Positions 2,745 through 52,024 of a DNA stretch of 64,000 nucleotides are shown piece by piece. The notes below the pieces were generated by a model. The model had not been told where the DNA came from, made no database searches, and saw only the letters and a program-made list of their open reading frames with translations. The DNA is from Octopus bimaculoides (Eukaryota), in assembly GCF_001194135.2 (NCBI RefSeq), contig NC_068990.1, positions 4,005,456 through 4,069,455 on the forward strand. Reading direction: 5' to 3'. The translations under genes and the position numbers were made by a program. Each line of letters opens with the position of its first letter. Positions within the stretch are counted from its first letter, which is position 1.

Positions 2745-2805
2745 TTAATGTAGACGGTGAATCTTTTTGGAAGTTCTCTTCTTTTTCTTTCTAGGACTGA
2801 GTTTC
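2745..2805 (-). CDS. Candidate terminal exon of the EGFR-like gene: (R)KLSPRKKKKRTSKKIHRLH* in phase 2
   Basis: Very strong acceptor (ttcttatttctttttctatttcttttcag|G), phase-compatible with the 28641 donor. It continues the K/R-rich composition, and AATAAA follows about 230 nt after the stop. Splicing across the 25.8 kb intron is inferred, not shown. Confidence 0.45.
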
Positions 2806-3128
2806 CTGAAAAGAAATAGAAAAAGAAATAAGAATATTGGAAACAGATAAATCTCTGAGGAGAAAAAAAAAACATGAGGTCAAATGACTATCTCATTTGA
2901 TGGGTAACATATGAATAAAGTTCTTGTCTCTTGACCTAAAATTGGGTTAAACACTAACTTTTCAAGTAAACTTCCAGTTAACATCAAAATCAGTTACATC
3001 TAAAAGATACTTCGACTTTATTCACTGTTGCTGAATGTGGCTTTGACAAAGAAATCCTAGAATGATTTAGACTCTGCACCACAACAGCCTCTCATTGGTG
3101 AGTCAGCAGTGGTGGCCACATCACTTAC

Positions 3129-3172
3129 TTGCCATCTCCTCCTGGATTCTAGCTAAATTCTTCTCAGTTGCT
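3129..3172 (-). CDS. Candidate 44-nt cassette exon: (R)ATEKNLARIQEEMA, phase 2->1
   Basis: Acceptor tttatgctggttacag|A, perfect donor GCAA|gtaagt. It is open only in phase 2, which is the phase left by the 28641 donor. Confidence 0.3.
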
Positions 3173-4994
3173 CTGTAACCAGCATAAACATTCAGTTATA
3201 CTCTTTTATCCTTTCCCTGGTTTTGGTTGCAGGTTTTCAGTTGTGCCAGGAGCACAGCCATCAAGAATTCAAACAGTCATATTGACTACAGGATTTATCG
3301 CAGTCAATTGAATATTTATACATATTTGATGCTCCACTAAGTTATAAACACACACAAACGAGTATGCATACATACACACACACACACAAATTCATGCATA
3401 TCTACATGCATACATCATCATTATCATCATCATCATTTAATATCCATTTTCCATGCTGGCATGAGTTACAAGGTTTGACTGGATCTGGTAAGCTGGAAAG
3501 CTGCTCCAGGCTCCAGTCTGTTTTGGCTTAGTTTCTATGACTGGATGCTCTTCCTAATGTCAACCACCCCACAGAATGTACTGGGTGCCTTTTACATGTC
3601 ACCAGCACTGGTGCCATTTACATGACACCAGTACTGGCTACAAATCCATATTTTGTTTATAATTAACACAAGAAAAAATTATTCAATACATTGTGTATAT
3701 GTATACATATATGTGTGCATAGATATAGACATATATGAGTGGTGCTGAAAAATTTCTAGCTTTAAGGGTATCGCGAAAGGTCTGGTTAGAAGCCCAGGCT
3801 TCCAACAGTAGACTGCTAATAACCATCGTTACTCTTTACCAGTGGCTACAAAGATGCTCCCTTGTTGATTTAGTATGTTTTAGTTGAGTCACCTGATGAA
3901 AATTTGAGACTAAGACATATAAATGAAGATATAACCCTTTTAACGTTCAGATTATTCTATCAAATGAAATGCTTATTTATATACATTGTTTTGGATTAAT
4001 CATACATTATTTCATAGCTTGAAGATATTGATAATGTGTTTGTTTAATTTTAGAAGATATTGTGGGGTAGGTGTGAGAAGTAAGATCCAGCCAGTTTGAA
4101 CATAAAACAGGTAGAATATATGTGCCAGACATGGTCAGTTTAAATGCTAAAGACAGGAAGGTAATGGTTTTAAAACAGATGTTGTTTATCGTTGGTTTCA
4201 TTATATGAAACAGAAAAACTAATTATTCACTGTTGGATAAATTATAAGCTTACTGTAGATAGACTTATGATTATTGTAATCTCTAACCACTAAATTTCAG
4301 GCGTAGTACCTATATTAGAAATAATTGTCATTATTACTAATGCCTTGTAGTATTTGTTCTGGCTCTTTACATCCAGAGTTCAAATCTTGCCAAGGTCAGC
4401 ATTACCTTTCATCTTTTAAAGTCAATAAAATAAAATACCAGTTCCCTCCCCCCCCCCAAAAAAAATTCTGTTCTTTTGCTCTATGTTACAAATTATTAAT
4501 GACCTGGTACTGATTCTGAACTTAGACACTAATATAGTGAAGATTAAATTCCTTGAGATGGTGCCCCAGTATGGCGATGATCCAATGACAGATACATTTT
4601 TATGTACTGCAATCAACTAACAGCTATAGACATTTCTGGAAACAAGAAAGATTATATCAAGTTGAGTCTGGTTAGTTGGTTCCTAACTAAATCCTTAAGT
4701 ATTGTCTACTGGTTCTCTAAACAGCTGAATCAACAGAGAATGTTTGCTTTGTCTCTAACAATATTGACTTGTTCAAATTTTTCAGCAGAGAATCTTAAAG
4801 CCATTAAACTTGGAGGAAATGCTACAAATCTGAGGATGTTGGAAAATAAATATTTTGGCTACACTTCAGAACAATGAATTCTATTAATCAATGTAAGATT
4901 TGCAGCTTTACTTGAAGAAAACCAAAATAATCTTTTCTTTCTGCATCCTGCACGTGTTATAACAACATGTAAAAAAAATACACACATCAAGTAT

Positions 4995-5030
<36 letters not shown>

Positions 5031-5830
5031 GTTGTCGTTTAACATCCGCTTTCCATGCTGGCATGGGTTGGACGGTCTGACTGAGGACTGGCAAGCCAGA
5101 AGGCTGCACCAGGCTCCAATCTGACCTGGCAAAGTTTCTACAGTTGGATGCTCTTCCTAACACCAACCACTCCATCTATAAATGCGTGTGTGTGTGTGCA
5201 TTATATGTATATATGTGGTATTTGCTATGCTTCTTTACATTCTGAGTTCAAATATTACAAATGTCAACTAAGCTTTCAAACCTCCAGTGGTCAATTAAAA
5301 AAAAAAGGTACCAGTTATATACTGGCATCAATATAATCAACTATTCCATGTGACAAAAAAATCTCAGGCCTTGTGTCTATCTTAGGAACAAATCTTTTTC
5401 TCATCTTCCTCCTTCTCCTCCTCCTCTTCCTCATCATTATCATCATCATCATCAGTTATGTAATGCATAACACCAACTGCCACTTTAGATACAAAATAAC
5501 AAGAGAAAAGTAAGACAGAGAGAAAAAAAAAATTAGAATCTTAAGTCAAAGAATATTTAATACAACGAAATGATAAATTCTCACCGCCGGAGATCAAACC
5601 CAAATTAAAATTTGATACATTCAAATCAATATTTTCTAGAAAATGAAATATTTTGAAACACAAACAAACAAACAAAGTAACAGAGAAATAGGAAATCACT
5701 TAAAGATTTCGTTAAGAGAAATATAAACAAAAATTTATGAAAAAAAATATAATAATGATAATATTAATGTTATTAATATTTATAAAAAATATTAATAATG
5801 ATTGCTCAGATAGATGAATACAATTTCCAG

Positions 5831-5923
5831 TATAATAATAATAATAATAATAATAATGACAATGCCAACAATGACGATAATAGTAATAATAATGATGATG
5901 ATGATGGTGATAACAACAACAAC

Positions 5924-5989
<66 letters not shown>
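5831..5989. repeat. (AAT)n/(AAC)n/(GAT)n compound microsatellite
   Basis: Directly visible; source of the poly-N/poly-L/poly-I pseudo-ORFs. Confidence 0.97.
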
Positions 5990-6820
5990 TGCTTCTGCTT
6001 ACGAGAGATTTTTACCACCGAAACTTACTATCGATTAAGCTCCATGATTTCATGTTCAAGATGAAATGGAGAAACATTAGTTTTGTTTTTGTTTCTCCTT
6101 TCTTTACATTTATTGATTATTAATAACATTAGCTTACCTGACACAAAATAATAATAACAATAATAATCTTTTCTATTATAGGCAAAAGGCCTGAACTACT
6201 GGGGTAGGGGTCCAGTCGATTACATCGACCCCAATGTTAGACTGGTGTATATATGCATACATACATAATGTATATATGTATATGTATGTATACATACACA
6301 CCATACACACAGGCACCAAGCACACATACACACACTCTCTTAAAGAAAGGGAAAAGAGAATATAAGAAATTTGCTCTCTTGAACTGAAGAGGGAGAGGAG
6401 AGTATTAAAGGAGAAGATATAGTAATGAGAGAGGAAAGAGATGGGGAAAATCTCACAAGCTCCACTTGAAGGAATAACAAAATCAACATTAGCAGCATTT
6501 TAATGTAAAATCGTGACCATCCATACAGACAGGCATGTCTTCTGTATCCCTCTTTCAGCTGAGAAACCCTACTCTTGCAGGCTCGTAGGTGCTGGAGCCA
6601 TGTAAAAGCACCAGTGCTGGTACCACATAACAGCACCTGTGCTAATGCCATGTAAAAGCACCCATGTCGGTGTCACGGAAAAGTGCCCATGCTGGTGCTA
6701 CATAAAAGTACCCACGCTGGCACCATAGAGAAAGCATGCAGTACACTCTGTAAAGCAGTTGGCATTAGGAAGGGCATCCAGCTCTAGAAACCCTGCCAAA
6801 ACAGACATGTGGAGCCCAGT

Positions 6821-6891
6821 CAGCTCCCCAGCTGGTCAGCTCCCCAGCTGGTCAGCTCCCCAGCTGGTCAGCTCCCCAGCTGGTCAGCTCC
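6821..6891. repeat. Perfect 16-bp minisatellite (CAGCTCCCCAGCTGGT) x4.4 inside a SINE
   Basis: Units start at 6821, 6837, 6853, 6869 and 6885. Confidence 0.95.
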
Positions 6892-7594
6892 TGTCGAGCC
6901 GTCCAATCAAAGCCAGCATCGAGAACAGATATTAAGTGATGATGATGATGACGACGATGGCTTTTCCATGCTTACATGGGCCAACTGAAATTCATTCAGG
7001 TAGATTTTTGTACAGCTGGATGCCCTTCCTGCTGCATATCTTTGTTTCCAAGCACAGTAACATTTAGCTATGACCAGACATGGTGTAGAGGAAGATTGGA
7101 AATGAAAGGCACTGTAACATGATTACACTTATTTACAAAATACAGCAAATGGCTTTCTTACAGGTTCAAATATGTCTCAAACTGATTTGAACAGGCAACA
7201 AATCTGTAATAATATACATCACAGCTGAGCACTTTTATTCCATATTGAAGTTATATATTTTTTTTTCTGTTTTTTCTCTGTATGAGTTGGGTATATTTTT
7301 AATGGTTATAAGGAGGTGAGACAGAGTTATCCTGACATCATTTAGGGTTTTTTTCTAAGTTTCAAAAAATTCTTATCATCTGGATTATTGATGCCATGAA
7401 AAAGTAAAGGATATAAGAGAAACTGATGGCCACTTTAGATGACAAGATAGATGAGCACTGACTATCATACCAGAGAACTTTTGAACATATTATCAATCAG
7501 ACAAGATACATGTGCGTGTGTATGTGTGTGTGAGTGTGAGTGTGTGAGTGTGTGTGTGGCTGTATGTGTGTGTATATACATGTGTGTATGCTTC

Positions 7595-7648
<54 letters not shown>

Positions 7649-7797
7649 TGTGTACATCTATGTGTGTGTATGTGAATGGATGTCTGATGTGTACACATAT
7701 ATATATGCACGTGTATGTGTCTGTATATGTATATATGTGTGTGTGTGTGGATATATTTAGTTATTTATGTGTATATCTATATATCTATTTATCTATC

Positions 7798-7831
<34 letters not shown>

Positions 7832-7841
7832 NNNNNNNNNN

Positions 7842-7876
<35 letters not shown>

Positions 7877-8844
7877 TCATCGTCAACAACATCATCATTT
7901 AGTGTCCACTTTCAAAGCTGGCATAGGTTAGATGGTTTGACTGGAACTGGTAACCAGGAGAGCTATACCAACTTACCCACCCGACTGGCCTCCATGCTGG
8001 TGGCACGTAAAAAGCACCCACTACACTCTCGGAATGGTTGGCGTTAGGAAGAGCATCCAACTGTAGAAACTTTGCCAGATCAGAGTGGAACCTAGTGCAG
8101 CCTCCTGATTTGCCAGTCCTCAGTCAAACCATCCAACCCATGCCAGCATGGAAAGCAGATGCTAAACAATGATGATGATGATGATGATGATGATATATCA
8201 TTATGTCTAAGTATGTGTACATGTGCAACGAGATCTACAAACAGAAGCTCAGAAATAGACAGTGAAATACACAGATATACAGACAGATACAAAGATGGTG
8301 GATTCAATAACCTGTTTGAAAATGTATCATTTGTAGCTGACCACAGCAATAAACTAGAGTTAAGATCACAGTTTAGGAGAAAGAAAGACACATAATAAAA
8401 AAGACTAAAATCAACATATTTTTACCCACTTTACAATGTGGAATGAATAGGAAAATGTGTAGCTACCATGTAAATTTATTGCAACTTTATGCAGTGAAGC
8501 TCAGCCCCGAGCTACACATTTGATATATTTCTGCAAAGAGAAGTAGAGTTACATAAAGCTGACTTGCAGGCTAATCCACCTGGAATAATGTTAAAATTTC
8601 AAATTGACTGTTCAGTTGTAATGTTTTATTGCTGTATTGTTTCCATGTAAAGTTTTGTGAACATTTGTGTACCTAATGCTAACTGAGGTATATGTTTATA
8701 AAGTGCATTTTTATGTACATATGGTTAAGTATGAGACTATATGTGGTGTGACTGTGTGTGCACATATACGTGTGTAAATATGCACGTGAATATATATATA
8801 TACGTGTACGTGTGTGTATATATATGTATGTATGTGCATGTATG

Positions 8845-8918
<74 letters not shown>

Positions 8919-9193
8919 TCTGTTTCCAAACAAGTTAATAATTCCCCCAGTCTATCGAGCAATGAAAAGCCTGGACATGCTTTCATGAAGGACTGCAGCA
9001 AACAACATTGTCTGTATGAATGGTGATGCTTTTGATAACAGTCAGCACAAACATGTCAACACACATGCATGTACATATATGTATATATATATAAGGTGTG
9101 TTATGAGCATTTACAGGGCACGTATCCTATATAAACTCAACAAACAATTAAAGATGGAGAAGAGATGATGTTAAAGGATGAAATTGAACTCAG

Positions 9194-9235
<42 letters not shown>

Positions 9236-9293
9236 AAGAACATAAATATATTCATTTGAATATATACCATTTTGCCTTGTAACTCCTTTATTA

Positions 9294-9335
<42 letters not shown>

Positions 9336-11566
9336 TATAGGCTTCTTCTAGTTCCTAATAAATTTCCCTCATAGGTATTTTTAAATAAATTTTTTCTACT
9401 TTTTTTTGTTTTTGTAAGTTCTAAATCATTCATCCTTTAGCATTTGAACTGGTTATATCCAGTCAGTTCCTGTTTCACATTCAAACTGGCCAACTCCAAC
9501 CTCTCACACCTTCCTTACAACATTAGTCTAAAAAATATACAATCACATCATCAAAAGTTAATGCTAAAGAGTTAATGCTCATAATATAAAAACCCAAAGG
9601 CTCCACCTTTTTTTCTGATTTTTAAAAAATGTTTCGATAAAAAAGTCAGTAGGTGATGAAAAAACAATTCCATGTTAAAACTAAAAAAGTCTCAGATATT
9701 AATAATTGATTTTGCACAGGATCATATCCTATATATGCTTCATATTACCTGCCTTTTATACAGGCAGCAAAAACTGCTGCTCTCAGCTACAAGATTACAA
9801 AACTACTCATTGCTTATTCATTTATTCATTAATTTATTTGTAATGGCTTAATCAGGACAGAAAGAGCTGTGTCTATGACCTTTTAGAGCAGTCATGAGCA
9901 AAGTACAACATTTAGGACTTTCTGAATGGCACAGCAATGAAAAATTACCTTGTTTCAGTAGTGCATACTGACCGATAGTGTAGAGGCACATGGTTTAGTT
10001 TATAAATGATTGGAAAGCTTGTGTAGTGTTTGTGGATGGATGAGTGAATTTGATGTTGCTCAAAGGGGTACTGAACCAGTATGATGTGACAGGGGTAAAC
10101 CAGCATATGTTGTCAGGCCCCGCTGCTGATATTAGGAGTTGCGTTCTATACATTGATCCGAGCATAGGATGGGGCTCACCTCTTTGAGCTGGGAAATGAA
10201 TGGAATGTCTGGTGTGTGTTTTATTGTGGCTACCACCTTCCAAAGTAATGGGGAATAGGCTTGAGTATATGTACGTATATATGTTTACCTGCCTGATAAC
10301 GAGCCATGTCTTATGCTGCCTACCTCTCGAAAAAAATGTTTTACAATGCCTGCTTTAGAGGGTCACCGAGATTGATAATAAAATGTTATCTTCAAACTGG
10401 AGACCTCATTTGAATATCTGCTATAAAGAGGACTCTGTTAAAGGCACCAATGGTAGTTTTAAACTAGGCAACACAGTAAGTCTAATATCCAAGAATAGGT
10501 GTGTTTCATCTAAGAGGTTTCAACATAGTTTTAGTCTACCAAATTTGAAATGCAAGGAATTATTCTACCCAAGGTTTTCATAAAAGACATATACCCAAAG
10601 TGATATGCAGTGGAATCAAATGTAAAAACCACAGACCTGTAATGTGCTGAAAATAAAACTGAACCAGGAACCGTGTTGCCACAAGTCAGACTTCTTAATG
10701 ACACAACCATACCAGAATCTGTGTTGTAACAATCTAACCATACCTGCATCCATCTTATCAATTCTCTTCCAGAATTCACATAATATCTATATAACCACAT
10801 TTACATGCCATGTACATAACTACATCTAAATGATATCTACGTATTGATATCTACATAACCAGATCAATATCATCTTTTCTCCATACATACCTCAGGACCA
10901 AAATGTGAAATGTGTTCATTATTATTTATGAGAAAAAAGTTTAAAATTATTATAAAACAACAAAATATTTTTTATGGCTCCATTTTATTAACAAATCATT
11001 TATTACTCTATACTTGAAGAATATAAAATTTACTTAAGTTTACATAAAGTTTTGCTTTTGTAATATTTTTATATTTAATTTTTATCTTGTCAACACATCT
11101 CTTTAATTCTGACAGATTTTTTTCTTTTCATCATAAAACACAATATCAGGTTTTTATATCAAACCATCAAACAATATTATTGATGTAGCAAGGAAACAAG
11201 CATCATAAAAACAAAAAAGACATATAAATTTTAAATATAAAATGCATTGCAAAATAAATTTAGTGTCGATATAAAACCATTTTAGCCTTTTTGATACATA
11301 CACAGGGGGAGTATCTTCAACACATCTACAAATACAAGCCAGTATGTTTGTGTGTATTTGTGGAGCTGTTGCTAATGTAATAGCATAATCTTATCCTCAG
11401 TTATTTTTAGAAAGTTGCTCAAATGCATTCTGCATCTACAAAAGTAATGCACTACCCGTTCTTAGGAACAAATGCAGTGGTCACTGACCACAAGTTCGTA
11501 AATATGTGCAATGGATGCAACAGATGGTTAATATACAATAGATACTGCAGACTAGTTGAGTCAATA

Positions 11567-12476
11567 TATTGGGTCATCCCATAAATAATGTAGTTTTTTT
11601 ATACTTCTTTTATTTTTCAAAATTAAGATAAACAAAGTTCTTTTTTAATCTAAGATATACTCTCTTTCATTTCCTACAATGTTCTTCTATCTATCTGGTA
11701 GACTTGCAAGGCCCCTCTTCCAAAATTCACTTGTCCGTGACGAAAAATACTCCTCCAGTACTATTCTGACCTTGTCTACAGAATTCATATTTTTTCAGTC
11801 CAAATGGTTTTGAAGACTGCAGAATAAATGATAATCAAATGGAGCAATGTCTGGCGAACATTGTGGGAGGGACATTGTTTTCCATTCAAACTGCTCCAGC
11901 CTTTGGAATGTCATCCTCACTTTATGTGGCCAAGCATTATCCTGATGGAAGAATACTTTTCATCTTGAAACCCATTTTCTGACTTTTCCAATGGCACACA
12001 AGTGTCGATGAATGGCTGAATGACCAAATCCAAGTTTCTCTGCTAGTTCCTCAACGGTTATGATTGGGTTTTGTTCCACCAGGGTTTGCAGGATGTTCTC
12101 TACTGATCTTCCTGGACAAGGATCGTCTTCTAGGCTGTAGTTTCCAGCTCAGAATTTCTGGAACCACAACTGATGCTGGATTACACTTATTGACCAATGC
12201 CCATATACTGCATTAATATTCTTCGCACTTTCCATTTTGTTGTTGCCTTTATTGAACTCATAAAGAAAAATATGCCAAATATGCTCCTTTGTCACTTCCA
12301 CTATAGCTTTGAAAAAATAACTGTAAAAATTGAACTGCACTCTTCAAAACTTGCACTAAGAATAAGGCCAAGGTAAAATTACTAACTGCTTTTATAGCAG
12401 GTAGTTTATCCCGTCGCCCTCTGACTTTTAGTTCATGCAATTGAAAAAATTGCATTATTTATGGGATGACCCAATA
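11567..12476 (-). mobile_element. Internally deleted mariner (DD34D-type) DNA transposon
   Basis: TIRs TATTGGGTCATCCCATAAATAATG / CATTATTTATGGGATGACCCAATA with TA on the left flank. Decayed transposase on the minus strand: EVTKEHIWHIFLYEFNKG..., FHQDNA.PH, SPDIAP.DYHLF. Confidence 0.9.
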
Positions 12477-13499
12477 CAAATAAACAAATGTATCAGAGAA
12501 CACCACAGTTCTTATTCTGCTCCAACCAATATTTCGTGTTTGTGACCAAGACATATAAACCTCCAAGAACTCTGCCAATATACTTATATAAAACACCATT
12601 ATCATGGCAGAGATATCACACACACACACTCTCTCTCTCTCTCTCTCTCTCTCTCTAGACACAGAAACACTAATACAACCCAGCAGGACAACTGAAAAAA
12701 ATAACTCTAAAAGACTGGAATCTCTACAGTTTCCTGTGAGTATTTTGAATTTTCCTCAAAATAAGTTGAGGAAGTTATACAGCTTTCGAACGCAATAAAC
12801 AATCAGTTTTAAAACCGTTAATATCTACACCTTCTGTGAATACCTATTATTTTTTTCCTCTTTGAATATTCGAAAATGTAAACATCCTCTTTATTCCAAG
12901 AACACTACAGTTTTCTCTGTTCCGACAGACAAAAGACCATCTCCAGTAAATTTTAAAAACTTCATATTTACAATTTTCTCTGAAAAAATTTTAACTTCCT
13001 TTTCTTTCTGTTCCTGTTTCCCTGAATATTCAAAAATGTAAACAGCCTTTTTATTGTAGAAAAAACAAAAACACCACAGTTTTCTCTGAACGGACATAGA
13101 AATGAACACCTCAAAAAATTTAGAAACTTTAATATCTCCAATTTTGTGGGAACATTTTGTCTTCCGTTCTTCCCTGACTAACAGAATATGTAAACATGCC
13201 TTTTATTGTAACAACACAATTAAATGCATGATAAAAAAATTAAGGAAGTAAGCACCTACCAATATATACATACTGCACAACTACAAAAACTGTAAACCAC
13301 AGCAAAACTTTTAAAAAGAAAAGAAAAAGAAAAAGAAATTGAGAAATTCGAAAATCCAACAAGGTGAACATCTCTTCCTCCTACTATTCCCAAAGACTGG
13401 AATATCTACAATTTCCTGTGAATATTTTAAAGCTCCCTCAAAATAAAATAAGTTAGGAAACTTAAATACCTAGAGCTTTCGAACACACAAACGATCAGC

Positions 13500-14092
13500 T
13501 ATAAGAGATGCCACAACAATATAGCTAGGCTTGTTCATTGGACACTTTCCAACAAGTATGGACTTAACAGAGCAAAAAATTGGTATGACCACAAACCTGA
13601 AGGCATCGTCAAAAATAGAAATGCAAAGGTCCTATGGTATTTTATGATTCAGTGCGACCATGAGATTGAGAATAGGAAGCTGGACATAGTCTTAATTGAG
13701 AAAGGAAACAAACCATGCTGGATCATAGATATAGCATGCCCAACTGACAACAAGGTATGCGATAAGGAAGAAAAAGTCGGGAGATATGACAGGTTAGCTT
13801 GGGGAAGTTAAGCAGGTGTGATCAATGAAAAAGGTGGCAGTAGTACCAATAATTGTCAGAGCCCTGGGAACAGTGAGCAAAAATTTCAAGAAATATGTGG
13901 AACAAATAGGGGCTGCAATAAGGGTGGAGCACTTGCAGAAAGCAGCATTGCTTGGAACTGCTCAAATACTCTTGAAGGTGCTCGAAAAATAAGAGGTGTT
14001 ACCTTAGTTCACTGGTAGTGAACAGCTGACACTGTAGTATATCTCCAGTGTTAGAAGCTGTGCAAAGGCAATAATAATAATAATAATAATAA
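13500..14092 (+). mobile_element. 5'-truncated R4/Dong-like LINE (restriction-like endonuclease C-terminus) with (AAT)n tail
   Basis: Translates as KRCHNNIARLVHW...WYDHKPEG...VLWYFMIQCDHEIENRKLDIV...IIDIACP...KVGRY...VPIIV.ALG...LQKAALLGTA.IL.KVL*, with one frameshift and one stop. The 3' UTR ends in (AAT)n. Confidence 0.85.
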
Positions 14093-14648
14093 ATTCCCTG
14101 ATATAATACCAAGCACTGGATCTCATGGCTTCAGATCTTAACTGATTGGAAGTGTTATCGCATAAGTTTTTTGTCTTGTTATAAAAGATGGGTCACAACA
14201 AATATTCCACTGAACACCATAGATTTGCTTGTCAGTTGTTTGACCTCAACCAGTTGAATATGTCTCTTAGTGGCTGACAATATGTGCATCACTGATCACA
14301 AGCAGAAGTAGTGGGGGAGCATCATAGCCACGTGTTGAGAGGAATTCTTTGGGGTTTGAATAATTCACCTCTGGAAATATGGGTATTTCATTCAACATCC
14401 TTAAACAACCCTTATTCAGGGACCTTTTGAGCAAGATGGGCTACTTGATCTAAAGAAAGTTCTAACTGGAACCCACTTGCAAGGTTATGCACTGTTTATC
14501 TTGATATGAAATCACCAGGCTGCACATATATGGTTGCAATGCATATACCTGGTGTACCCTTATCAGATGAGTAGTCCTGATGGGTATACTGGGCTTCATA
14601 TACTTGTACCCCAGTGTCACTTTGATGGCATGCACTGCTCTCTCACTC

Positions 14649-14687
<39 letters not shown>
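14093..14687 (+). mobile_element. Non-coding dispersed repeat (about 570 bp) with (AAT)n tail, copy 1
   Basis: Collinear with 58274-58720 (shared blocks such as aacaacccttattcagggaccttttgagc and cagtgtcactttgatggcat). No ORF. Confidence 0.8.
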
Positions 14688-14688
<1 letters not shown>

Positions 14689-15082
14689 TAAGCCCCTTCT
14701 GTACTAGGTGAGATGCAATGTAAGTGGAGAGAGATTAAAATTTAAAATATTAAATTAAAATTCTTAGCTAACTTGGGAAAATTGAACTCCTGTAAGTTTA
14801 ATTCTGAGTCTACCAATCAAATAAACACATGGTGAAGTCGTGCAAATTTAACTCAGAGATTTTTACCAATCAAATTTAGAGAGAGACACATAGACAAAAA
14901 TGAGGTATGTATGTGGAGGTGGGGGTAGGGATGAATATAAGTAATTGAGGACATTTTAAGTCATGTTTTTGAATGTATAAGATACTTAGAGTTTAAATCT
15001 ATGCACAATGTTTAACTCTTACAAACTGCCATCATCATATGGTTTCAGATTAAAGATTAGTGTTTATCAAATGCAACAAGAA

Positions 15083-15120
<38 letters not shown>

Positions 15121-15362
15121 CATACATACATACATACATACATAAATATATATATATACACACATGCACACATATGTAAATATATGAGACAAGGGAAGGC
15201 TTGTGTGTGTACATGTATATAGAATTCAAATTACATATTCATAGACATATATATATATATATATATATTTTTTTTTTTTTTCTTTCCTTTTCCAAGCGTC
15301 TCGTAACACAATGTGTATCACGTCCTCATGGTGTTGTTTTTTTGTCTTTTTCCTTTTTTGAA

Positions 15363-15434
<72 letters not shown>

Positions 15435-15981
15435 CCTGATTTTATTCAAATGAATATTACTACTACTACGACTACTACTACTACTACGACTACTACTACT
15501 ACTACTACTACTACAAAGTTCTTTGCACATTATATATGTGTTGTGTATATTACATGTTATTCACATAAGCATCATCATCATTATCATTAACATCACTTTA
15601 TGTCTACATTTCATACTGGCATGGGTCGGACAGGTCACCACAGTCAAAATGAGATGGGCTTTGAGCCTCATTTCACTCGCATTTCACTTTTGGCTTAGCT
15701 CCTATGGCTGGTTGCTCTTCCTAACACCAAACAATTTACAGAGCATACCAGGTGGAAGAACTAGAGAGGTTTCTTGTCCTTCCTTAACAAGACAAAAGGG
15801 TCCCACAATCACAAAATTACAGAGTGTGCTGGTTTGTCGGTTTTTTTTTTCTTTTTCGAAACCAGTACTGGAGAGGTAGCTATGCAACTCAATGCAACTA
15901 AAGGGACTACACAATCTTACAGTTCTGTCCTTTCACCAGCATCTTAACAGCGTGAGAAGCATAAATGACTAAAGCATGAAA

Positions 15982-17090
15982 GGTGCTGCTATGCCAGTCA
16001 TTGGGTATGACTCCATCATGAACTACCTGGTTTACAATACAGGTGACAAGATCATAACCCACACCACCAGATGTTTTAAGCACCTCAGCAGTGATTATTG
16101 ATGGGCCGTGGGCTTTTCCTGGCTTCATACCCTTAATTGCCTTATCTACCAGCGTGCTGTCTATCCAGATAGCTGGTACCTCGACTAGGTCAACATTTGG
16201 CAGGCTCTCCTCCTCCCATTCAATCTCTACATTCAGCAGTCTTTCACAATGGCTTCTCCAAGCCTCTTTCTTTTCCAATCATTAAACGCAATGGCACCGT
16301 CATCCATGCAGACACATTTCTCTCCTGTGACATCACAATTTTCTCTCACACACTGTCTTGCAATCCAAAATATTTCAGTTCTTTGGTCCTCACGTCACTG
16401 GACATTGCCAAACATCTTCTATTCTGCTTCGCCCTTGGCTATGTATACCTGTCACCCAGCCTCCCCCCTTCTGGCTATCTGGTACGGTTCACTGCTACCC
16501 CCACCCTTCCAGGCTTTCCAGGTTTGTTCCTTTGCTCTAATGGCTTTATCTCACTACCATGCAGCATCACAGTTCTAACACAAGCATCTGTCCTTCACTC
16601 TGAGGGAAAGATTTTATTACCTGCAGCAGTAGAAGCTATGCTCCCTTGTAATTTTTCCAGCCTCTTCTTACACTGGATATTATACTTTTGGAGCGACCAC
16701 CTCCCTTGCAAATTATGTCTCCAAGCTAACAGAAGCTATCAACTACCTGTAGTGAGTCATCCAAACATCTACAAGAATCTACTTCTGGTATGCTTATAGT
16801 ATGGACTGTTCTGGTGCATCTGTTACATATGAAGTTTATTATCATGGTTTATCTTCCTGCAATACATTTATACCACTTGTGTGTCAGTAACTTATATTGG
16901 GAACACTGTATGGAGTTTATATGCATGCTTTTCTTGCATGTCAAGAAAGGCTATTTCCCTGAGGATACCAAGGTCCTATTTTCTTTCCTATTTCCAAAAA
17001 CCTTTGTCTTTGCTAAATTTACCTCTAGGCCTCTTGATCTAGATCTAGCATTTATGCCTGGAATTTCCTCATTAATTCTTCTATAGATTC
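15982..17090 (-). mobile_element. Decayed RTE-clade LINE fragment (endonuclease-RT linker)
   Basis: KKEAWRSHCERLLNVE...VDKAIKGMKPGKAHGPSIITAEVLK...VTCIVNQVVHDGVIPNDW matches the pre-RT domain of RTE LINEs. Frameshifted upstream; boundaries approximate. Confidence 0.85.
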
Positions 17091-17223
17091 AGTTATGAGA
17101 ACTAGATTGGCAACATATTGGAGTTCCTGTGAACAGTCAGTCTTAAACTTTTATATATATATATATATATATATAAATATATATATATAGAGAGAGAGAG
17201 AGAGGGGGGGGAGAAAGAGAGAG

Positions 17224-17561
17224 GGGGAGAGAGAGAGGGGGGAGACTGACAGACAGAGAGGACACAGCCTTGTGAGTGGATCTGGTAGACAGAAACTGGA
17301 AGAAGCCCATTGTATATGTGTGTGTGTGTGTGTGTGCACGCATGTATATGTTTGTGTGTCTGTGTTTGTGTCCCTCACCATCACTTGACAACTGATGTTG
17401 GTGCATTTACGTCCCCATAACTTAGCAGTTTGGCAAAAGAGACCGATAGAATAAGTATTAGGCTTACAAAGAATAAGCCCTGGGGTTGATTTCCTCAACT
17501 AAAAGTGGTGCTCCAGCATGGCCACAGTCAAAATTACTGAAACAAGTAAAAGAATAAAAGA

Positions 17562-17562
<1 letters not shown>
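17224..17562 (+). mobile_element. tRNA-derived SINE, family 1 (body ...GAAACTGAAAGAAGCCC, (TG)n core, tail ...ACTGAAACAAGTAAAAGA)
   Basis: The same blocks recur near 988-1395, 20870-21030, 22785-22900, 26960-27030, 31170-31400, 48365-48515, 55335-55530, 56405-56530 and 63310-64000. Confidence 0.85.
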
Positions 17563-17594
<32 letters not shown>

Positions 17595-19084
17595 GTTTGT
17601 GTGTATATATATATATGTTTTTTGTATATATACGGAGAAATAGATAAAGACACTGAGATATACATACATGTAAAATACTATACAGCTATTTAAAAGTTAT
17701 TTCAATATATCTGGTTAGCTGTTTCCATAATGAATTGTAAAGATTCTTTTTATTGACATGTTGCAATCTGTTTTCAGTGTCAGGATTAAACATCTATCAG
17801 TTGTCAACTTCTTTTGCAAACATTCCTCTAAATCCAATAACACTCAGCTTAGAGTTATATATAAAATAATCAAACCACATAAACAAAATATATAAATAAG
17901 AAGCTAGATTGAAATTTTGATATAAAAACAAGTGTCTACACACACACACACACACACACACGCATGAATAATATATCTGGATATTTTAATTTGGGAGATA
18001 GGAAGGCAGAAATGGTGGTTATTGAAAGAGCCTTGAATTTTCCTCATTGTGCTTCCTAAGATAACAATTATTGATGCTTTATTTTTTTTCTAAATATGAT
18101 ATAATATGCTGTTGTTTCTTTGATTAACCAGATAATACAGTGTCTATTTGTATTTTTTCCTAGATATTGTAAAAACATGTAGCTAGCTAAGGAAACATGT
18201 TATCAACAAAGCTGCACCATCAAATGAAAGGCCAAGTCAACTATTGTGGTGTGTCAGCATAGAATATAAAAGAAATACAGTTATATGCTATAGGGTATCA
18301 ACAACAATGACAATAACTGATAATTAATAATATTGACAATTTGTTTTTCTATTGCCTAAGACTTCTCCAAAGATAATGTGTTTCTTAATTGTTTATGTGT
18401 GAATATTTTTATTTGAAAATTTTCTCCATTAAATTATAATTATTATGTTAGGTAAGTAGATATTGTCATATAGAAAGACGCCTAAGGAAATCTCTTGAGA
18501 TTGTTTCTGTAAAGTAGGAAATTGTATAACCAATGCATCTTAGAAAGAACCAACATGCTGGATAAACACAAATGTTGCAACAAAAACAAAAATAGATAGC
18601 AGTCTCCATTGGAACATTAAATAGACATTTAGAAGTAAGGAAGGAGAGAGATAGGTAGGTGGGAAAGTAAGTGTGATTGCATATCTATCAATATTAAACT
18701 AAAACTCAAAGTTTGTTTTCCTACTATTTGATTAAGATGATAAAGATTACAAATAGGATAGTCATTTACCCCTTTAAGAAAAAAAAATCAAGTTGAAAAC
18801 CGACTCTTCAAAAAGTTGTCATCCATCCTTTCCCCTTTTTCTTACTTTCTGTTTTCCTCCCTTAATCATTTATACAACTTTTGTGTGCCATGGACTGAAG
18901 GAGAAATTCTCCCTATATTTCTGAGATATCTTTTGAATCATAGTTACTTGATTTTTTTTTTTTTTTTTTCTTAAAGAGGAAATATACTATCCTATTTAAA
19001 ATAAAATATTAATATTTATCATCTTAATCAAAAGGCAGAAAAACAGATAGACTATCTCTTTATATACAAAGATCAGTTGCAATG

Positions 19085-20000
19085 GAAAAACAAAACAACA
19101 AATGGATTGTACCTTATAATGAAACTCTTTTAAGAGCATTCTAATGCCACTGCAACATTGTAATTGTTGCCTCAGTGAGGTAAATTAAGCACGTCATCAA
19201 ATACATGCTGAAAGGAAAAGATCAAGCTTCTGTTCAAATAAACAATGATAACGAAATTAGTCAGTATCTAATGGGTAGGTATACTGGACCATCCAAAACA
19301 GTTGCATCCATTTTAGGACTTTCAATTCATGAAAGAGCACCTGCAATAGAGAGACTGCAAGTTCATCAACCTGATGAACAAAGAATATTGCTCAGAAATA
19401 GTGAGAAAATATATGGCTGTCAATGAACAACATATGAGAACAACATTGACAGAGTTCTTTTCGTTGTGCATCAGTGATGACTTTGCAAAAACATTACTTT
19501 ATACTGAAGTACCCTGTATTTCATTTGGAGCAGTAGTAACAAAGAATGGCAAAGAAGAAAGTGAGGAAAAAAACTGAAAAGCTTTTTTCAGAGTTATTTA
19601 CTTTGAATTGTTAATATCTTATATCTGATCAACCTGTTATTATGTAACATGCTTCACGATTTTAGTATACATACCTTATTAGTATCTCCTCCTAAGTTCT
19701 ATATACTCTGGGAATGCATTGAAGCCCTTTTCAGGGCTACTTTATTTGAATTCTTACTATCAGGTAACTAATTTCATGTTATTAACATAACTGACTTCAC
19801 AATTTGGGTATTCATAACTTATTGGGAATTCCTAAAACAAGATCCTGTGTAAGACAGTTTGGTATTCTCTGCAAATGCACAAAAACCGTTTTAAGGGCTA
19901 CATACTTTGTATTGTTGTTATTGGATTAGCGAAACAATTATGAGAACGGAACCAAGGGATAAGCCCCGCTTTCCCAGGAATTACCGGGTACATCAGCTAG
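19085..20000 (+). mobile_element. Helitron remnant (Rep-helicase fragment plus 3' terminus)
   Basis: WIVPYN..LL...AHCNI....IKHVIKYMLKGKDQA...NEISQYLMGRY...IHER.PAIERLQVH.PDEQ...TTLTEFF.L...D.FAKTLLY.EVP. The element ends in a GC hairpin remnant then CTAG|T at 19997-20001. Confidence 0.85.
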
Positions 20001-21340
20001 TATATTTATATTTGGGGAAAACAATAAAGAAAATGGAGAAGAAATGGATATGATTAATAATTAATAACAAACAAATAATTTATAAATTATATCCATTTCT
20101 TCTCCATTCTCTTCTTCTTTTCCCCAAAATATTAATAATTTCAATAATCCCAAATGGTTTTCACATTTTATGATACAGGTTAAACCAGTGGAATACCTTG
20201 GATTATATAATCTTTAATGAGGAAATGACTTCTTTGAATTAATCATATATATAATTAGATATAGACTTTTTTAAAGCTTAGTCTCTCAAAAATATGGAAT
20301 ATATGTGAGTGTGTGTGTGTGTGTGTGTGTATGTAGGAGGAAAACAACTAGTTTTAAATCTCTGATTGAGATCTATGTAGTAACAGTACTGCATAGTAAA
20401 TTTTAGTTGCCAACATAATAAATATATATATATATATATTATGTGGTAATGCTTCAACATGTAGAAAAGCACTCAATCAGCTAACAGAGTAAAGATGCCC
20501 ATAAGTCAAAAATAAAAGCACACTCAATATAATAAAGTCGGTATATTTTTTTAATGTCAAAAGGTTATGTACTTCCAGCCAACATGTCTGAAGTGTGGTC
20601 AATATAATCTAGTGGAAATATTCGGTGCTAAGCTAATACTAACAGTATAACCTGTTATGTACCATAACCAATAATATATTTGCTTGACGATATATATATA
20701 TCATCATCCTCCTTTAACGTCCGTTTTCCATGCTAGCATGGGTTGGATGGTTTGAACAGAGTTGGGAAGCTGGTGAGCTGCACCAGGTTTTCAAGGGTGT
20801 ATGCATGTGTGTGTGTGGGGAGGGGTGTACATATATATGTGTGTGTGTGTGTGTTTGTATGTATATATAGGCACAGACATGGCTCTGTGGTAAGAAGCTT
20901 AGTTTCCAGCTGCATGGTTTCGATTTCAGTCCTATTGTGTGACACTTTGGTCAAGTGTCTGCCACTAAAGTCTCAGGATGATCAAAGCCTTCTGAGGCAA
21001 TTTGATAGATGGAAACTGAAAGAAGTCCGTCATTTGTGTGTATATATATATATGTAAATATACATACACGTATGCATGTGTGTGAGTGTGTGTGCATGTG
21101 CACATGCGCATGTGTCATTTAGAAAGTAAAACATTATAGCTAGTCAGAGAGTTGTCATTAGTTTCATACCTATGAAGCACTCAGCAGTATAGGCAATATT
21201 TGGTATGAGTTCTTGTCCCTGAATTATAGAGGGGAAAAACTCTGAAGCTGGGTTGTTTGTTAGTAGTGCAAATGTCGAACTATATATTTATACTTGAATA
21301 TTCATCTGAATATTTTCAATCTTTACTTTCTCTCTGTTTA

Positions 21341-21465
21341 CATGTAGATATGTAGACATGTAGATATGTAGATATGTAGATATGTAGATACATATGTAGA
21401 TACATATGTAGATATGTAGACATGTAGACATGTAGACATGTAGACATGTAGACATGTAGATATGT
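21341..21465. repeat. 8-bp minisatellite (ATGTAGAY)n
   Basis: About 14 units with two ACAT insertions. Confidence 0.93.
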
Positions 21466-22146: not shown

Positions 22147-22182
<36 letters not shown>

Positions 22183-23362: not shown

Positions 23363-23412
<50 letters not shown>

Positions 23413-28524: not shown

Positions 28525-28640
28525 GACCTCCTTAAAAGAATGTGAAGAAAAGGGCACCAAAAGTATACACTCTCATGTTTCACAAACCAGTCTCTGAATT
28601 ATATATAATTACAGAATTCTTAGAAAGATCTGCCATTTAC

Positions 28641-40354: not shown

Positions 40355-40557
40355 GACATGCAATTCTGTCTTTATTGTCTATAAGGACCGTCTTCTGTGT
40401 GGACGTTGAGAAAATGTGTGACATGTTCATTGTGTTGGCATAACACAAATTAGGGTTCTTGCGGATCATGACGCTCCCTTGGTAAATATGTCGTAGAGAG
40501 TTCAGGTTTAACGATTGTAATCCCCTGCAGAAAACTACAGCCAAAGCATATCCATTT
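40355..40557 (-). CDS. EGFR-like: EGFR-like exon (end of L2): NGYALAVVFCRGLQSLNLNSLRHIYQGSVMIRKNPNLCYANTMNMSHIFSTSTQKTVLIDNKDRIAC
   Basis: Acceptor gttttatttag|A, donor TGTC|gtaagt, 203 nt, phase 2->1. Contains the L.SL.L.SL..I..G.V.I..N.NLCYANT motif of the EGFR family. Confidence 0.95.
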
Positions 40558-43269: not shown

Positions 43270-43431
43270 AGTGTTTTCTGACCATTAATAATCTTCAGAT
43301 TCCTTAACATATGGAGACTTGTTATAGTCGGCACTGTATCCGAAATGTATAGGTAGTGGGTGATTTCTTCGATAGACATTAGTATATCCAATTTGCTGGG
43401 ACTCATTGGAGGTACATTGTAGTATCTATCC
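43270..43431 (-). CDS. EGFR-like: EGFR-like exon (L2 domain): DRYYNVPPMSPSKLDILMSIEEITHYLYISDTVPTITSLHMLRNLKIINGQKT
   Basis: Acceptor tttcactttcag|G, donor CACT|gtgagt, 162 nt, phase 2->2. EIT.YLYI and L..L.NL.II.G are L-domain motifs. Confidence 0.93.
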
Positions 43432-47987: not shown

Positions 47988-48093
47988 CCTTTAAATGTAG
48001 CCTCAACTATAGCAATGTGACCCCTCACGACTACACAGTCTTTCAGTATATCAATGTTTCCTGCATGAACGAAATCCTCTTCAAATACACATT
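47988..48093 (-). CDS. EGFR-like: EGFR-like exon (start of L2/domain III): ECVFEEDFVHAGNIDILKDCVVVRGHIAIVEATFKG
   Basis: Acceptor tattttcacag|AA, donor AAGG|gtaagt, 106 nt, phase 1->2. NI..LK.C.VV.G.I.I is a receptor L-domain signature. Confidence 0.93.
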
Positions 48094-49364: not shown

Positions 49365-49481
49365 CTTTTGGACACTTTTTGCATGGCTCACAGACATTTG
49401 TGGAATATTGGTCAGTTTTGACGGATGATGTTCCTTCAGGGCATGATAAGACACATGTATCACCATATCGAGAAGTGTAAG
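49365..49481 (-). CDS. EGFR-like: EGFR-like exon (domain II C-terminal modules): (A)YTSRYGDTCVLSCPEGTSSVKTDQYSTNVCEPCKKCPK
   Basis: Not in the ORF track. Acceptor gttattttacag|CT, donor AAAG|gtaacc, 117 nt, phase 1->1, open frame joining both neighbours, pattern C-x3-CP...C-x2-C-x2-CP. Confidence 0.92.
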
Positions 49482-49879
49482 CTGTAAAATAACAACAGCT
49501 GATTATTTATATTTGGCACATAAAAAGCACCCAGCAAATTTTGTTAAATGGTTGGCGATAGGAGGGGCATCCAGCTGTAGAAACCACGCCACAACAGACA
49601 GCTAGAGTCTGGACAGCTCCCTGCAAGCCAGCTCCATGTCAAACTGTCCAACCTATGCCACCATGGAAAACAGATGTTAAACAATGTTGATGATGAGTAG
49701 AAATGAAATCACAGCAGGATATAAGACCTTAATTTGAAATCACATAGTTTTAACTTGTTACTTATTGGTTAAAAGATGTTCTTGTATTTATCTTTTCATG
49801 AGCCTGTTTGACAAACTCATTGAGAAAGTTAAATTCATAAGCAATCTATTCAATTCACAGAAACCAAAATGAACACTGG

Positions 49880-50372
49880 GGTGAGGCAACAAACTCGATT
49901 TTATGCCTGTTCTCACTTGAAGTCATGAATGTTGGATAACGACTAAAAGGGTACAATCATGAATACGAGTAACCCAAATGGGGTTTCTTTGAAGGATCTC
50001 TAGGGTAACATTACTCAACAAGGTGTGTAGCTTGAAGATCAGGTAGTCTCTCCAGGTTGAGCCACTATTTCTCCACAAAAAGAGGTCACAGCTCTGGTAC
50101 TATGGTCATGTGATTAGAATGTCACAGGAAAGAATGGCAAGACAAATTCCTCAAGCTATGCCAACTGGCAGAAGCCCTAGAGGTAGACCAAGAATGAGAT
50201 GGTTGGATAATATCCATAATCTCAATTGGTCATGCTTGGGAGTCCAGCCAGAAAGTCTAATGATGATTGTTTCTGAGAGGATCCTATGGCGGAGGTACCT
50301 GAGGGCCCTCTACTGCAATGATTCACACAGGAGTAGTGGACAGAAGAGATGGATGGATGAATGGATGGTGAA
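49880..50372 (+). mobile_element. RTE LINE 3' end fragment with (GGAT)n tail
   Basis: QLWYYGHVIRMSQERMARQI.QAMPTGRSPRGRPRMRWLDNI, then a short UTR and tggatggatgaatggatg. Confidence 0.85.
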
Positions 50373-51490
50373 GTGATAATAAAGTCATGACATGGCTGTG
50401 TGGTTATGAAGTTTACTTTACAACTTCATTGTTTCAGGTTCAATCCCACTATGTACAACATGCACCATTGCCTCTACATTGACCAAAGTTTTGCAAGTGA
50501 AATTTAGTCAATGTAAACCTGTCTTGAGAAGTAAAACTTAAATTGCCACCAGGTTTAAGACCATCACTTGGCCCTTTAGTGGACCTTATGGAGGTGCAAG
50601 TAGTCAAGCTAGGTCTCCAGGTTGAGGATAAACTCTCCCTTCCTTTCATCAGTCTTAGGAGCTCTGTAAAGAGCTGTGTACAATGCCCCCTGTCCTCTGA
50701 CTATGCAATGAAGAAAAAGAAAACAATAATTTGATTCTGAATGTCAACCATTCATTCATTCAGCAGGACACAAAGTAACTCCAACTGGAGGAACCCTTCT
50801 CTTGACAGTGCTTACCACCATCTGTTTCATGCTGAAATTTATTTCAATGATCTGCTTTACTCACCAAGCTAGGCCTATTGGTTGGTGAAAATGATTTTCA
50901 GGCATTTAGGTGGAATTTAACTCAGAACATAGAGAGGTGGAATAAAATACCACAAGGCATCAAAGCTGAGATTCTTACAGTTTTACCAATCCACCACCCT
51001 GCTACCCTGAATTGATTTATTGACTCCAAAAGTATGAAAGGCAAAGTTTAGATCAGCAGGATTTAATCACAGAACACAAAGAACCAGAACAAATAACACA
51101 AGATTTTCTATCCAATATTCTTATGACCCAGATATTTCAACATATGATTAAACAAGGTCTTTGCATTATTAAAAACGTTTTCAAATGCTAAACGCTATTG
51201 TTATAGTAAAACCACTTAGATTTCTGTTTATCAGCAAATTTTCAATGGAATATTATTTTCCAAGGACATAATGCAATACTCCTCATAGAAATAAAATCCA
51301 CAGTTTGTGACTTCATACAATTAACCACTCAAAATTTTGTTCTTTAATTTTGTTGCAAAGAATGTTGAAAAATATTTGTTTTGAAATTTGACATTTAAAT
51401 AAATTTCAGAGTTGTACTTCTCTAGCAAGTGATTTGATCTGATATTGAGGGTTGAAAGTGAAGCAACTACACTGTGCAAGAGCCATTTGA

Positions 51491-51711
51491 CCCTTTAGCC
51501 TTTAACCTGGCCATATCCAGCCAAGATATTTCATCTGTTTTACATTCAAACTGACCAAAGCTGGCCACTCACACCAACCCTACAATATAATCCTAAAAAT
51601 TAATGGTTACCTCATCGAAATTCCAAAACTACAAGATAAATGTAAGATTAATTCAAAACAATGTGAATAAATAAAAATTACTTTTGACAGGATAAGGCAA
51701 ATGCTAAAGGG
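51491..51711. mobile_element. piggyBac-like MITE (related copies near 9434-9594 and 25390-25560)
   Basis: TIRs CCCTTTAGC.TTT / AAATGCTAAAGGG, flanked by degenerate TTAA (TTGA, TTAG). Confidence 0.7.
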
Positions 51712-51885
51712 TTAGTAACATACAAAGTTGTTAAGTTCAAAGTTACAGTTATACAGATGTGTAATGAAAATTTTAACAACTTATGAAATAAATTTAAAGT
51801 GAATAAAGAGTTTTGTGTGTTCTTAATTGGCTCTTCCATGATGTTATTACCATTTAAACAATATGAAAAATGTTTTTGTCATTAC

Positions 51886-52024
51886 CTGGACATTCTCTAA
51901 GACAGATATCCTGAAAGGTTAACTTATTCTGGTCACCTGAGTGGATTCTCATTCTTTTGCGGTTGTTCCGAATAGATGGACAGCTCTCTACACATGCACC
52001 ATCATCATTCATATGTCTACAGGC
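51886..52024 (-). CDS. EGFR-like: EGFR/ErbB-like receptor exon (end of Cys-rich domain II): ACRHMNDDGACVESCPSIRNNRKRMRIHSGDQNKLTFQDICLRECP
   Basis: Acceptor ttttttcag|GCC, donor CCAG|gtaatg, 139 nt, phase 0->1. The Cys spacing C-x8-C-x3-CP...C-x3-CP matches the furin-like module equivalent to human EGFR exon 7. Confidence 0.93.

Follow-up and report, generated by a model that had tools for sequence, protein, structure and literature searches.

Does the octopus genome hold a gene of the EGFR family that was built without a membrane anchor and without a kinase, or do the missing exons lie elsewhere? The question is raised by a stretch of 64,000 nucleotides (nt) from Octopus bimaculoides (contig NC_068990.1, positions 4,005,456 to 4,069,455 of the forward strand), hereafter the window, which carries on its minus strand a set of exons for an EGFR-type ectodomain. 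An initial annotation, made from the letters of the window alone, had read these exons as part of a gene for a secreted, kinase-less receptor ectodomain with a polybasic tail that might serve as a decoy for EGF-type ligands. Our comparative analysis of the locus and its orthologues fully supports, at the level of sequence, a dedicated gene and not a splice isoform, with a predicted product that would be a secreted ErbB ectodomain with a polybasic tail and with neither a transmembrane segment nor a kinase.

Seven minus-strand exons lie where they had first been placed (Table 1); their AG acceptors and GT donors are canonical and their phases compatible throughout, and they assemble to the proposed 357 amino acids. 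Together with a terminal exon at 2805-2745, they splice to a minus-strand product of 377 amino acids that is 100% identical to residues 266-642 of the O. bimaculoides protein XP_014770046.1, with window position 2745 being the end of the annotated coding sequence (CDS). The last of the seven, exon 12, leaves the cysteine pattern of the family and reads KSKKRGSRKDRK, as had been pointed out, and its predicted junction with the acceptor at 2805 is the very junction used in the annotated 642-amino-acid proteins of four octopod species.

The acceptor at 2805, the peptide (R)KLSPRKKKKRTSKKIHRLH with its stop and an AATAAA at 2515-2510 are all present in the window. Judged from the window alone, this terminal exon is not above chance because the 28.6 kb downstream of exon 12 hold 26 comparable acceptor-like sites (selected by a fairly strict rule), open frames in the required phase have a median of 19 codons as compared with 20 for the 2805 exon, and AATAAA occurs there at 1.5 per kb. 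It is the orthologues rather than the window that establish it. The acceptor, tail and stop proposed initially match both XP_014770046.1 and an exon at the syntenic place in Argonauta with 83.6% nucleotide identity; this similarity is confined to the exon, starting at the acceptor and ending at the conserved stop codon. The AATAAA motif at 2510-2515 is indeed where it had been reported, but its frequency is at chance level and Argonauta does not share its position.

Searched exhaustively with HMMER, exon 10 returned one very strong match, a protein of 642 amino acids, whose 90% cluster comprises two fragments from the first O. bimaculoides annotation and four full-length proteins of exactly 642 amino acids each: CAI9729185.1 of O. 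vulgaris, XP_014770046.1 of O. bimaculoides, XP_029640805.1 of O. sinensis and GAB1602997.1 of Argonauta hians. All four annotations end at the same stop, and the first-generation annotation of O. bimaculoides had split the gene into two models of 273 and 373 amino acids. Short matches to exon 10 with ca. 50% identity were considered as possible squid orthologues and turned out to be single-exon open reading frames (ORFs) of vertebrate EGFR genes. The taxonomic scope of our results is Octopoda, covered by three Octopus species and Argonauta, so that of the "dedicated cephalopod gene" proposed initially the dedicated gene stands, conserved in four species, but its cephalopod range is shown for Octopoda only.

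Aligned piecewise across all of its runs of N, the window is 100% identical to O. bimaculoides chromosome CM046610.1 (GCA_001194135.2), on which we reconstructed the CDS of the whole gene as 13 coding exons across 97.9 kb. Exons 6 to 13 lie inside the window. No exon for L1 or early CR1 was found between 52.1 and 64 kb of the window, so the 5' end of the gene is outside it, and exons 1 to 5 of the same gene were located on the chromosome sequence to the right of the window end, as had been suspected. The orthologous Argonauta locus spans 44.5 kb without a single N and has 13 coding exons of identical lengths (97, 360, 132, 84, 122, 139, 117, 106, 162, 203, 209, 137 and 61 nt in both species), and all introns of both loci are GT-AG. 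Every run of N in the O. bimaculoides gene falls into an intron or outside the CDS, with the exons colinear across the gaps. Exons hidden in these gaps are excluded because the orthologous locus with the same 13 exon lengths is gap-free, and no exon is hidden in, or broken by, an assembly gap.

The same loci were searched for the parts of a receptor that the exons lack. With human EGFR as query (tblastn, E<=50), no kinase, juxtamembrane or transmembrane segment was found in the 64-kb window, and only the seven exons matched; a hydropathy scan of all open minus-strand segments in 1-28640 gave no transmembrane-like exon, only microsatellites and low-complexity sequence. Both results uphold the earlier observation that the 28 kb past exon 12 contain no transmembrane or kinase exon. 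Such exons might also have been sought in the N gaps or left of window position 1, and none was found there within 10 kb downstream: human EGFR beyond residue 620 had no match (tblastn) in either whole locus, O. bimaculoides or Argonauta, including the 10-kb downstream flanks. At the protein level, kinase motifs are absent from the four orthologues, the kinase families PF07714 and PF00069 are absent from the precomputed Pfam content of the 642-amino-acid proteins, and these proteins have no hydrophobic C-terminal end of the glycosylphosphatidylinositol (GPI) anchor type. The best 19-residue hydropathy after the signal peptide is at most 1.56 on the Kyte-Doolittle scale in all four, as compared with 2.7-3.4 in true EGFRs. 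Despite its database name, the product thus has neither the single-pass transmembrane helix nor the cytoplasmic tyrosine-kinase domain of a receptor tyrosine kinase. A splice isoform of such a receptor would share its gene with transmembrane and kinase exons, and in two species there are none in the gene or the 10 kb downstream, while a second EGFR gene of octopuses is distinct (see below).

Two ways of passing over the terminal exon were followed up and rejected. Exon 12 contains a weaker donor (AAAG|GTATTT) upstream of the one in use (AAAAG|GTAAAT, phase 2), and there is no conserved downstream exon to receive a transcript spliced from it; between the two donors we count 0 non-synonymous and 5 synonymous changes against Argonauta. 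A transmembrane-like segment at 5038-4862 (poly-Met, hydrophobic, with RAGCRKKR) consists of an (ATG)n microsatellite plus repeat and is not conserved in Argonauta.

Evidence independent of any annotation pipeline comes from selection. The CDSs of O. bimaculoides and Argonauta share 83.7% DNA identity and 90.8% protein identity, and by the Nei-Gojobori method the whole CDS has a synonymous divergence (dS) of 1.22 and a non-synonymous divergence (dN) of 0.047, giving a dN/dS of 0.039. The tail is no exception, with 13 synonymous and 4 non-synonymous differences across codons 612-642 (dN/dS 0.040), of which its exon-12 part contributes 5 synonymous and 0 non-synonymous ones; dN/dS of exon 13 is 0.048. 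Because of this low dN/dS, the conserved stop and a similarity that ends at the exon borders, the sequences indicate that the tail is translated and functionally constrained and that the gene is not a pseudogene.

The predicted product is a protein of 642 amino acids composed of signal peptide, L1, CR1, L2, a truncated CR2 and a 31-residue basic tail, and full-length orthologues show the Pfam domains PF01030, PF00757, PF01030 and PF14843 in this order. On the window product, Pfam detects Recep_L_domain (PF01030, 8e-23), GF_recep_IV (PF14843, 6e-20) and Furin-like (PF00757, 2.4e-19); it is colinear with human EGFR residues 227-580, and its closest solved relatives are the Drosophila and human EGFR ectodomains (E ~1e-66). 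In an AlphaFold2 model, residues 2-23 form a hydrophobic N-terminal helix ahead of the first conserved cysteine, which by inspection we read as a putative signal peptide. In the four octopods, each of the 46 cysteines between human C31 and C617 inclusive has an aligned, conserved counterpart. The pattern ends exactly after the loop equivalent to human C595-C617 with no half-cystine left at the truncation, and the final two-disulfide module (the four cysteines of human C620-C636) is replaced by the tail, where 18 of 31 residues (612-642) are K or R and one is D. We considered the tail as a remnant of a basic juxtamembrane segment and discarded this idea, as the juxtamembrane regions of invertebrate EGFRs are not polybasic. 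Three further cysteines are specific to octopods and absent in other EGFRs, namely C126 and C129 (a CxxC pair in L1) and C450 in L2. The mature chain has an odd number of cysteines (49), and at least one of them is therefore predicted to be a free thiol or to form an intermolecular bond.

The AlphaFold2 model has a mean predicted local distance difference test score (pLDDT) of 84.1 with four confident domains, and residues 616-642 remain below 50, which predicts a disordered tail. Foldseek retrieves the ErbB ectodomains (EGFR, ErbB4, ErbB3, ErbB2 and Drosophila EGFR) at E ~1e-44 with template modelling scores of up to 0.73. The model is closer to their extended, ligand-bound forms (0.66-0.73) than to the tethered ones (0.41-0.44), in agreement with the replacement of the tether residues D563 and H566, though we regard this fit as weak evidence for an extended conformation. 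The dimerisation arm of domain II (residues ~283-300, exon 6) reads RNNRKRMRIHSGDQNKLTF; it is nearly invariant in octopods and very unlike that of other EGFRs, polybasic (RNNRKRMRIH) and without aromatic contact residues at nearly unchanged length. Judging by composition, this arm could serve as another polyanion-binding patch or as a site for convertases. For ligand binding, we checked 14 contact positions, which we take to be those described for the EGF and TGF-alpha complexes (1IVO and 1MOX) and whose placement depends on the alignment: two, D355 and E90, are identical and six are conservatively replaced. D355 is the partner of the invariant arginine of the ligands.

Where does this gene stand among EGFRs? 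The octopod protein is 31-38% identical to all EGFRs compared, molluscan ones included. The initial annotation had called for an EGFR tree, and in a neighbour-joining tree of 223 L2-CR2 columns the octopod proteins form a clade with 100% bootstrap on a long stem; no supported affinity to the EGFRs of Lottia or Plakobranchus emerged from this distance tree. The closest kinase-bearing match, P0027, was considered as the canonical octopus EGFR and dismissed, being only 36% identical to the octopus probe and hence not octopod. A second EGFR-family gene of octopuses is LOC115215570 of O. sinensis, known as the 'egfr' marker of octopaminergic inner-granular-layer neurons of the optic lobe in the O. 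vulgaris brain atlas (PMC9712504). Its probe encodes a longer cysteine-rich domain IV/V, has its best match in Lottia EGFR-1 (41%) and is only 38.5% identical to the kinase-less protein (domain IV).

We note that EGFR-like models without transmembrane segment and kinase motifs are also found in a hemichordate (Glandiceps talaboti, 696 amino acids), a crinoid (Antedon mediterranea, 732 amino acids), amphioxus (Branchiostoma floridae, 832 amino acids, with a duplicated L2-CR2) and a tunicate (Clavelina lepadiformis, 596 amino acids). These may be truncated models or further dedicated genes for soluble ectodomains.

We consider a gene for a kinase-less secreted ErbB ectodomain acting as a surface- or matrix-retained trap for EGF ligands to be the best explanation of these data, and by a small measure a probable one. 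The protein would be secreted; its L1 and L2 faces would bind one or more EGF-like or neuregulin-like ligands of the octopus; and its basic tail, perhaps together with the basic arm of domain II, would hold it on heparan sulfate or other polyanions at the cell surface or in the matrix. It would thereby trap or store ligand locally without signalling itself, and so limit or shape the output of the kinase-bearing EGFR, a hard-wired version of the role of vertebrate soluble EGFR splice isoforms. The separate gene, the signal peptide (by inspection) and the missing membrane anchor are those of a secreted decoy, and the dense K/R cluster in an exposed flexible segment (pLDDT <50) is what a heparan-sulfate-binding tail would look like; a trap seems the most economical reading of this anatomy. 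More tentatively, and short of calling it probable, we propose that octopods carry in their germline a constitutively secreted EGFR decoy, derived from an ancient ErbB paralogue that lost transmembrane segment and kinase and exchanged the last module of domain IV for a heparan-sulfate-binding tail; tethered in this way, it would trap EGF/neuregulin and thereby set how far EGFR signalling reaches. Several points weigh against the trap. Six of the 14 ligand contacts are replaced non-conservatively (Q16I, L69V/S/G, L382Y, Q384S, F412A and K465V), heparan-sulfate binding is suggested by tail composition only, and the tail offers many di- and polybasic sites to trimming by proprotein convertases. 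Furthermore, LOC115215570, a distinct gene that looks canonical in its domain IV/V probe, is only a candidate for the kinase-bearing receptor, and the four annotations of the kinase-less protein may not be independent, given that homology pipelines copy models.

Instead of a ligand, the protein might bind the ectodomain of the kinase-bearing EGFR in non-signalling complexes, as an inhibitor or co-receptor, and herstatin and soluble ErbB3 have been reported to bind receptor ectodomains. Domain II is complete, its arm loop has hardly changed in length and is almost invariant in octopods, the model prefers an extended, dimer-competent conformation, and a surface tether provided by the tail would place the protein beside receptors. 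With the human dimer contacts of the arm lost (Y246 to N/S, Y251 to M and R285 to L) and the arm being polybasic, we nonetheless consider this unlikely. We are similarly doubtful about a neofunctionalised secreted protein without any role in EGFR signalling that would have a non-EGF partner or be a matrix or adhesion component or a signal. The long stem branch, the low identity to any EGFR, the changes in several ligand contacts and all tether and arm residues, and the three lineage-specific cysteines would fit such a history, but strong constraint acts on the two L domains and on all structural cysteines, neither D355 nor E90 has been lost, and ca. 35% identity is normal between EGFRs of different phyla, all of which bind EGF-type ligands.

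Alternatively, the gene could encode a full-length receptor tyrosine kinase after all, with transmembrane and kinase exons more than 10 kb past exon 13 and the 642-amino-acid form as a minor isoform. Introns at this locus are huge (up to 27 kb) and the downstream span inspected is 10 kb, but we regard this reading as very improbable: exon 12 itself swaps the last cysteine module of domain IV for basic residues under selection (0 non-synonymous vs 5 synonymous changes), exon 13 has been conserved at a dN/dS of 0.05 together with its stop, neither a conserved coding block nor a kinase match was found in the last intron and 10 kb downstream in both species, the Argonauta locus is gap-free, the four annotations share their stop, and a separate EGFR gene exists. 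Least credible of all is a decaying partial duplicate or an annotation artefact, as might be suspected of a product shorter than every characterised EGFR whose first annotation came in two pieces. The ORF of 1929 nt is intact, its exon lengths are identical across a dS of ~1.2, dN/dS is 0.04 and all splice sites are canonical, and these selection data, as far as sequences can tell, already refute a pseudogene.

A ligand-trapping ectodomain has precedents in several systems, from all of which the octopod gene differs. In the human soluble EGFR (sEGFR) isoforms B and D (p110 sEGFR), the alternate terminal exons 15A and 15B take over from the full-length mRNA after exon 15; isoform D is associated with membranes through a mechanism that is not known, and avian sEGFR is a ligand-binding protein that inhibits growth dependent on ligand (PMC2907331). 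Like the octopod protein, isoforms B and D are ErbB ectodomains that end in domain IV and whose short unique C-terminus is supplied by a terminal exon of its own. They diverge at or near the same exon border as octopod exon 12, which we take, with human borders that are partly assumed, to correspond to human exon 15, though the intron phase may differ. Unlike these alternative transcripts of a kinase gene, the octopod form would be the sole product of a separate, old and conserved gene, the replacement of its last cysteine module already lies within the shared exon, and its unique tail is polybasic.

Among dedicated genes, Drosophila SDR encodes a secreted L1-CR-L2-type homologue of a receptor tyrosine kinase ectodomain without transmembrane segment and kinase that acts as a ligand trap, but it belongs to the insulin-receptor and not the ErbB family and has an independent origin; we know of no polybasic tail in SDR. 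Drosophila Argos is a secreted antagonist that sequesters the EGF-family ligand Spitz and limits the range of EGFR signalling. Its fold is unrelated to the receptor, whereas the octopod protein is a receptor homologue. Herstatin, which arises by retention of ErbB2 intron 8, and p85 soluble ErbB3 are secreted truncated ErbB ectodomains that inhibit signalling; in contrast to the octopod protein, they are splice or retention isoforms truncated earlier, and herstatin binds receptors rather than ligand. Short exon-encoded K/R-rich segments that bind heparan sulfate and restrict diffusion are known from PDGF-A/B, VEGF-A (exons 6/7) and PlGF-2, and sFlt-1 is a heparin-binding, kinase-less receptor decoy that is retained on the matrix. 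The former carry their basic motifs on ligands and sFlt-1 is a splice isoform, and we liken the octopod tail to them by composition. Finally, Lottia gigantea EGFR-2 and Smed-egfr-6 are spiralian EGFR paralogues with inactive kinases (Barberan et al. 2016, PMC4914847). Like the octopod gene, they are duplicated spiralian EGFRs that gave up catalytic signalling, which suggests regulatory roles, but they keep a transmembrane segment and a pseudokinase, both of which the octopod gene lost.

The features of the gene inside the window are compiled in Table 1, and window positions (p) are converted to positions in our extracted locus (L003) as 110647 - p. The annotated protein uses the upstream acceptor of exon 11 at 31632.

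Table 1. Coding exons and other features of the kinase-less EGFR-family gene in the window.
Feature	Window position	Strand	Description
Coding exon 6 of 13	51886..52024	minus	139 nt; final part of CR1, with the dimerisation-arm loop; L003 58623-58761; Argonauta exon of equal length; presumably corresponds to human EGFR exon 7
Coding exon 7	49365..49481	minus	117 nt; final CR1 modules
Coding exon 8	47988..48093	minus	106 nt; start of L2 (domain III)
Coding exon 9	43270..43431	minus	162 nt; L2 with the conserved GD(R)Y motif (human D355/F357)
Coding exon 10	40355..40557	minus	203 nt; L2 core; query that retrieved the orthologues
Coding exon 11	31424..31632	minus	209 nt; first part of CR2 (domain IV)
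Coding exon 12	28641..28777	minus	137 nt; CR2 as far as the C595-C617-equivalent loop (human numbering), followed by the first 12 residues of the tail, KSKKRGSRKDRK
Last intron	2806..28640	minus	25.8 kb, as against 9.9 kb in Argonauta; contains microsatellites and transposon debris and no conserved coding block
Terminal exon 13, coding part	2745..2805	minus	61 nt including TAA; encodes (R)KLSPRKKKKRTSKKIHRLH and the stop
AATAAA, candidate poly(A) signal	2510..2515	minus	230 nt past the stop; position not conserved in Argonauta
Conserved non-coding block	4690..4902		in the last intron, single-copy; 75.8% identity over 215 nt to Argonauta

Downstream of exon 12, Octopus and Argonauta share as colinear blocks only exon 13 and three short ones. 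The block at 4690-4902, ca. 2 kb upstream of the terminal exon and at a colinear position in Argonauta, was considered as an alternative exon and found to be non-coding, as each of the six frames in Argonauta contains stops; a regulatory role, or one in splicing or polyadenylation, is conceivable for it. The other two, likewise non-coding, lie past the stop, one at 1811-1928 (73.8% over 122 nt), which could mark the end of the 3' untranslated region, and one at L003 115068-115150 (81% over 84 nt), beyond the left end of the window. The introns are rich in (TA)n, (CA)n and (ATG)n microsatellites, and several assembly gaps lie inside such microsatellites. In the chromosome-level assembly, a 2.1-kb run of N (L003 110647-112754) directly adjoins window position 1 on the left, and throughout the gene this v2 assembly carries the same gaps as the window without added sequence. 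Mariner remnants are present on the minus strand in the last intron (12149-12340) and upstream of exon 6 (63193-63438) as ORF fragments that match the helix-turn-helix of the Mos1/mariner transposase (Pfam HTH_48, 4.4e-13 and 6.8e-08, respectively). In addition, a short interspersed repeat with a translation of roughly '...NPCQHGKRML.DDDDD...' or '...CWHRLDGLTG...' occurs on both strands (4908-5132, 6759-6988, 22358-22543, 45477-45798 and others).

Models of the gene have been in RefSeq and UniProt since the genome of 2015 under the names 'receptor tyrosine-protein kinase erbB-4' or 'EGFR-like', and our literature searches found no paper that describes the gene or its accessions. The initial statement that such a gene had not been described thus holds for the literature but not for the public databases. 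Barberan et al. restricted their metazoan EGFR survey to sequences with a kinase domain (PMC4914847), which would for this reason have missed such genes. It appears that the kinase-less, tailed architecture is undescribed, while the sequence itself has long been public under a misleading name. Between the receptor tyrosine kinase label in RefSeq and UniProt and kinase-based EGFR surveys that exclude the gene by design, this amounts to a systematic blind spot.

If our interpretation as a ligand trap is true, the gene would be a receptor-derived counterpart of Drosophila Argos and, to the best of our knowledge, the first of any animal to be described as a dedicated ErbB-family decoy, and the hemichordate, crinoid, amphioxus and tunicate models would hint that such decoys evolved repeatedly and were overlooked through the requirement for a kinase. 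Soluble ErbB ectodomains of vertebrates are known as minor splice products whose physiological role is debated; strong purifying selection at near-saturated dS in octopods argues that an EGFR ectodomain can, in soluble form, be essential in its own right, and a locus with one gene and one product would offer a clean genetic handle on it. Cephalopod biology would gain a candidate extracellular regulator of EGFR signalling in animals whose canonical receptor marks specific neurons of the optic lobe.

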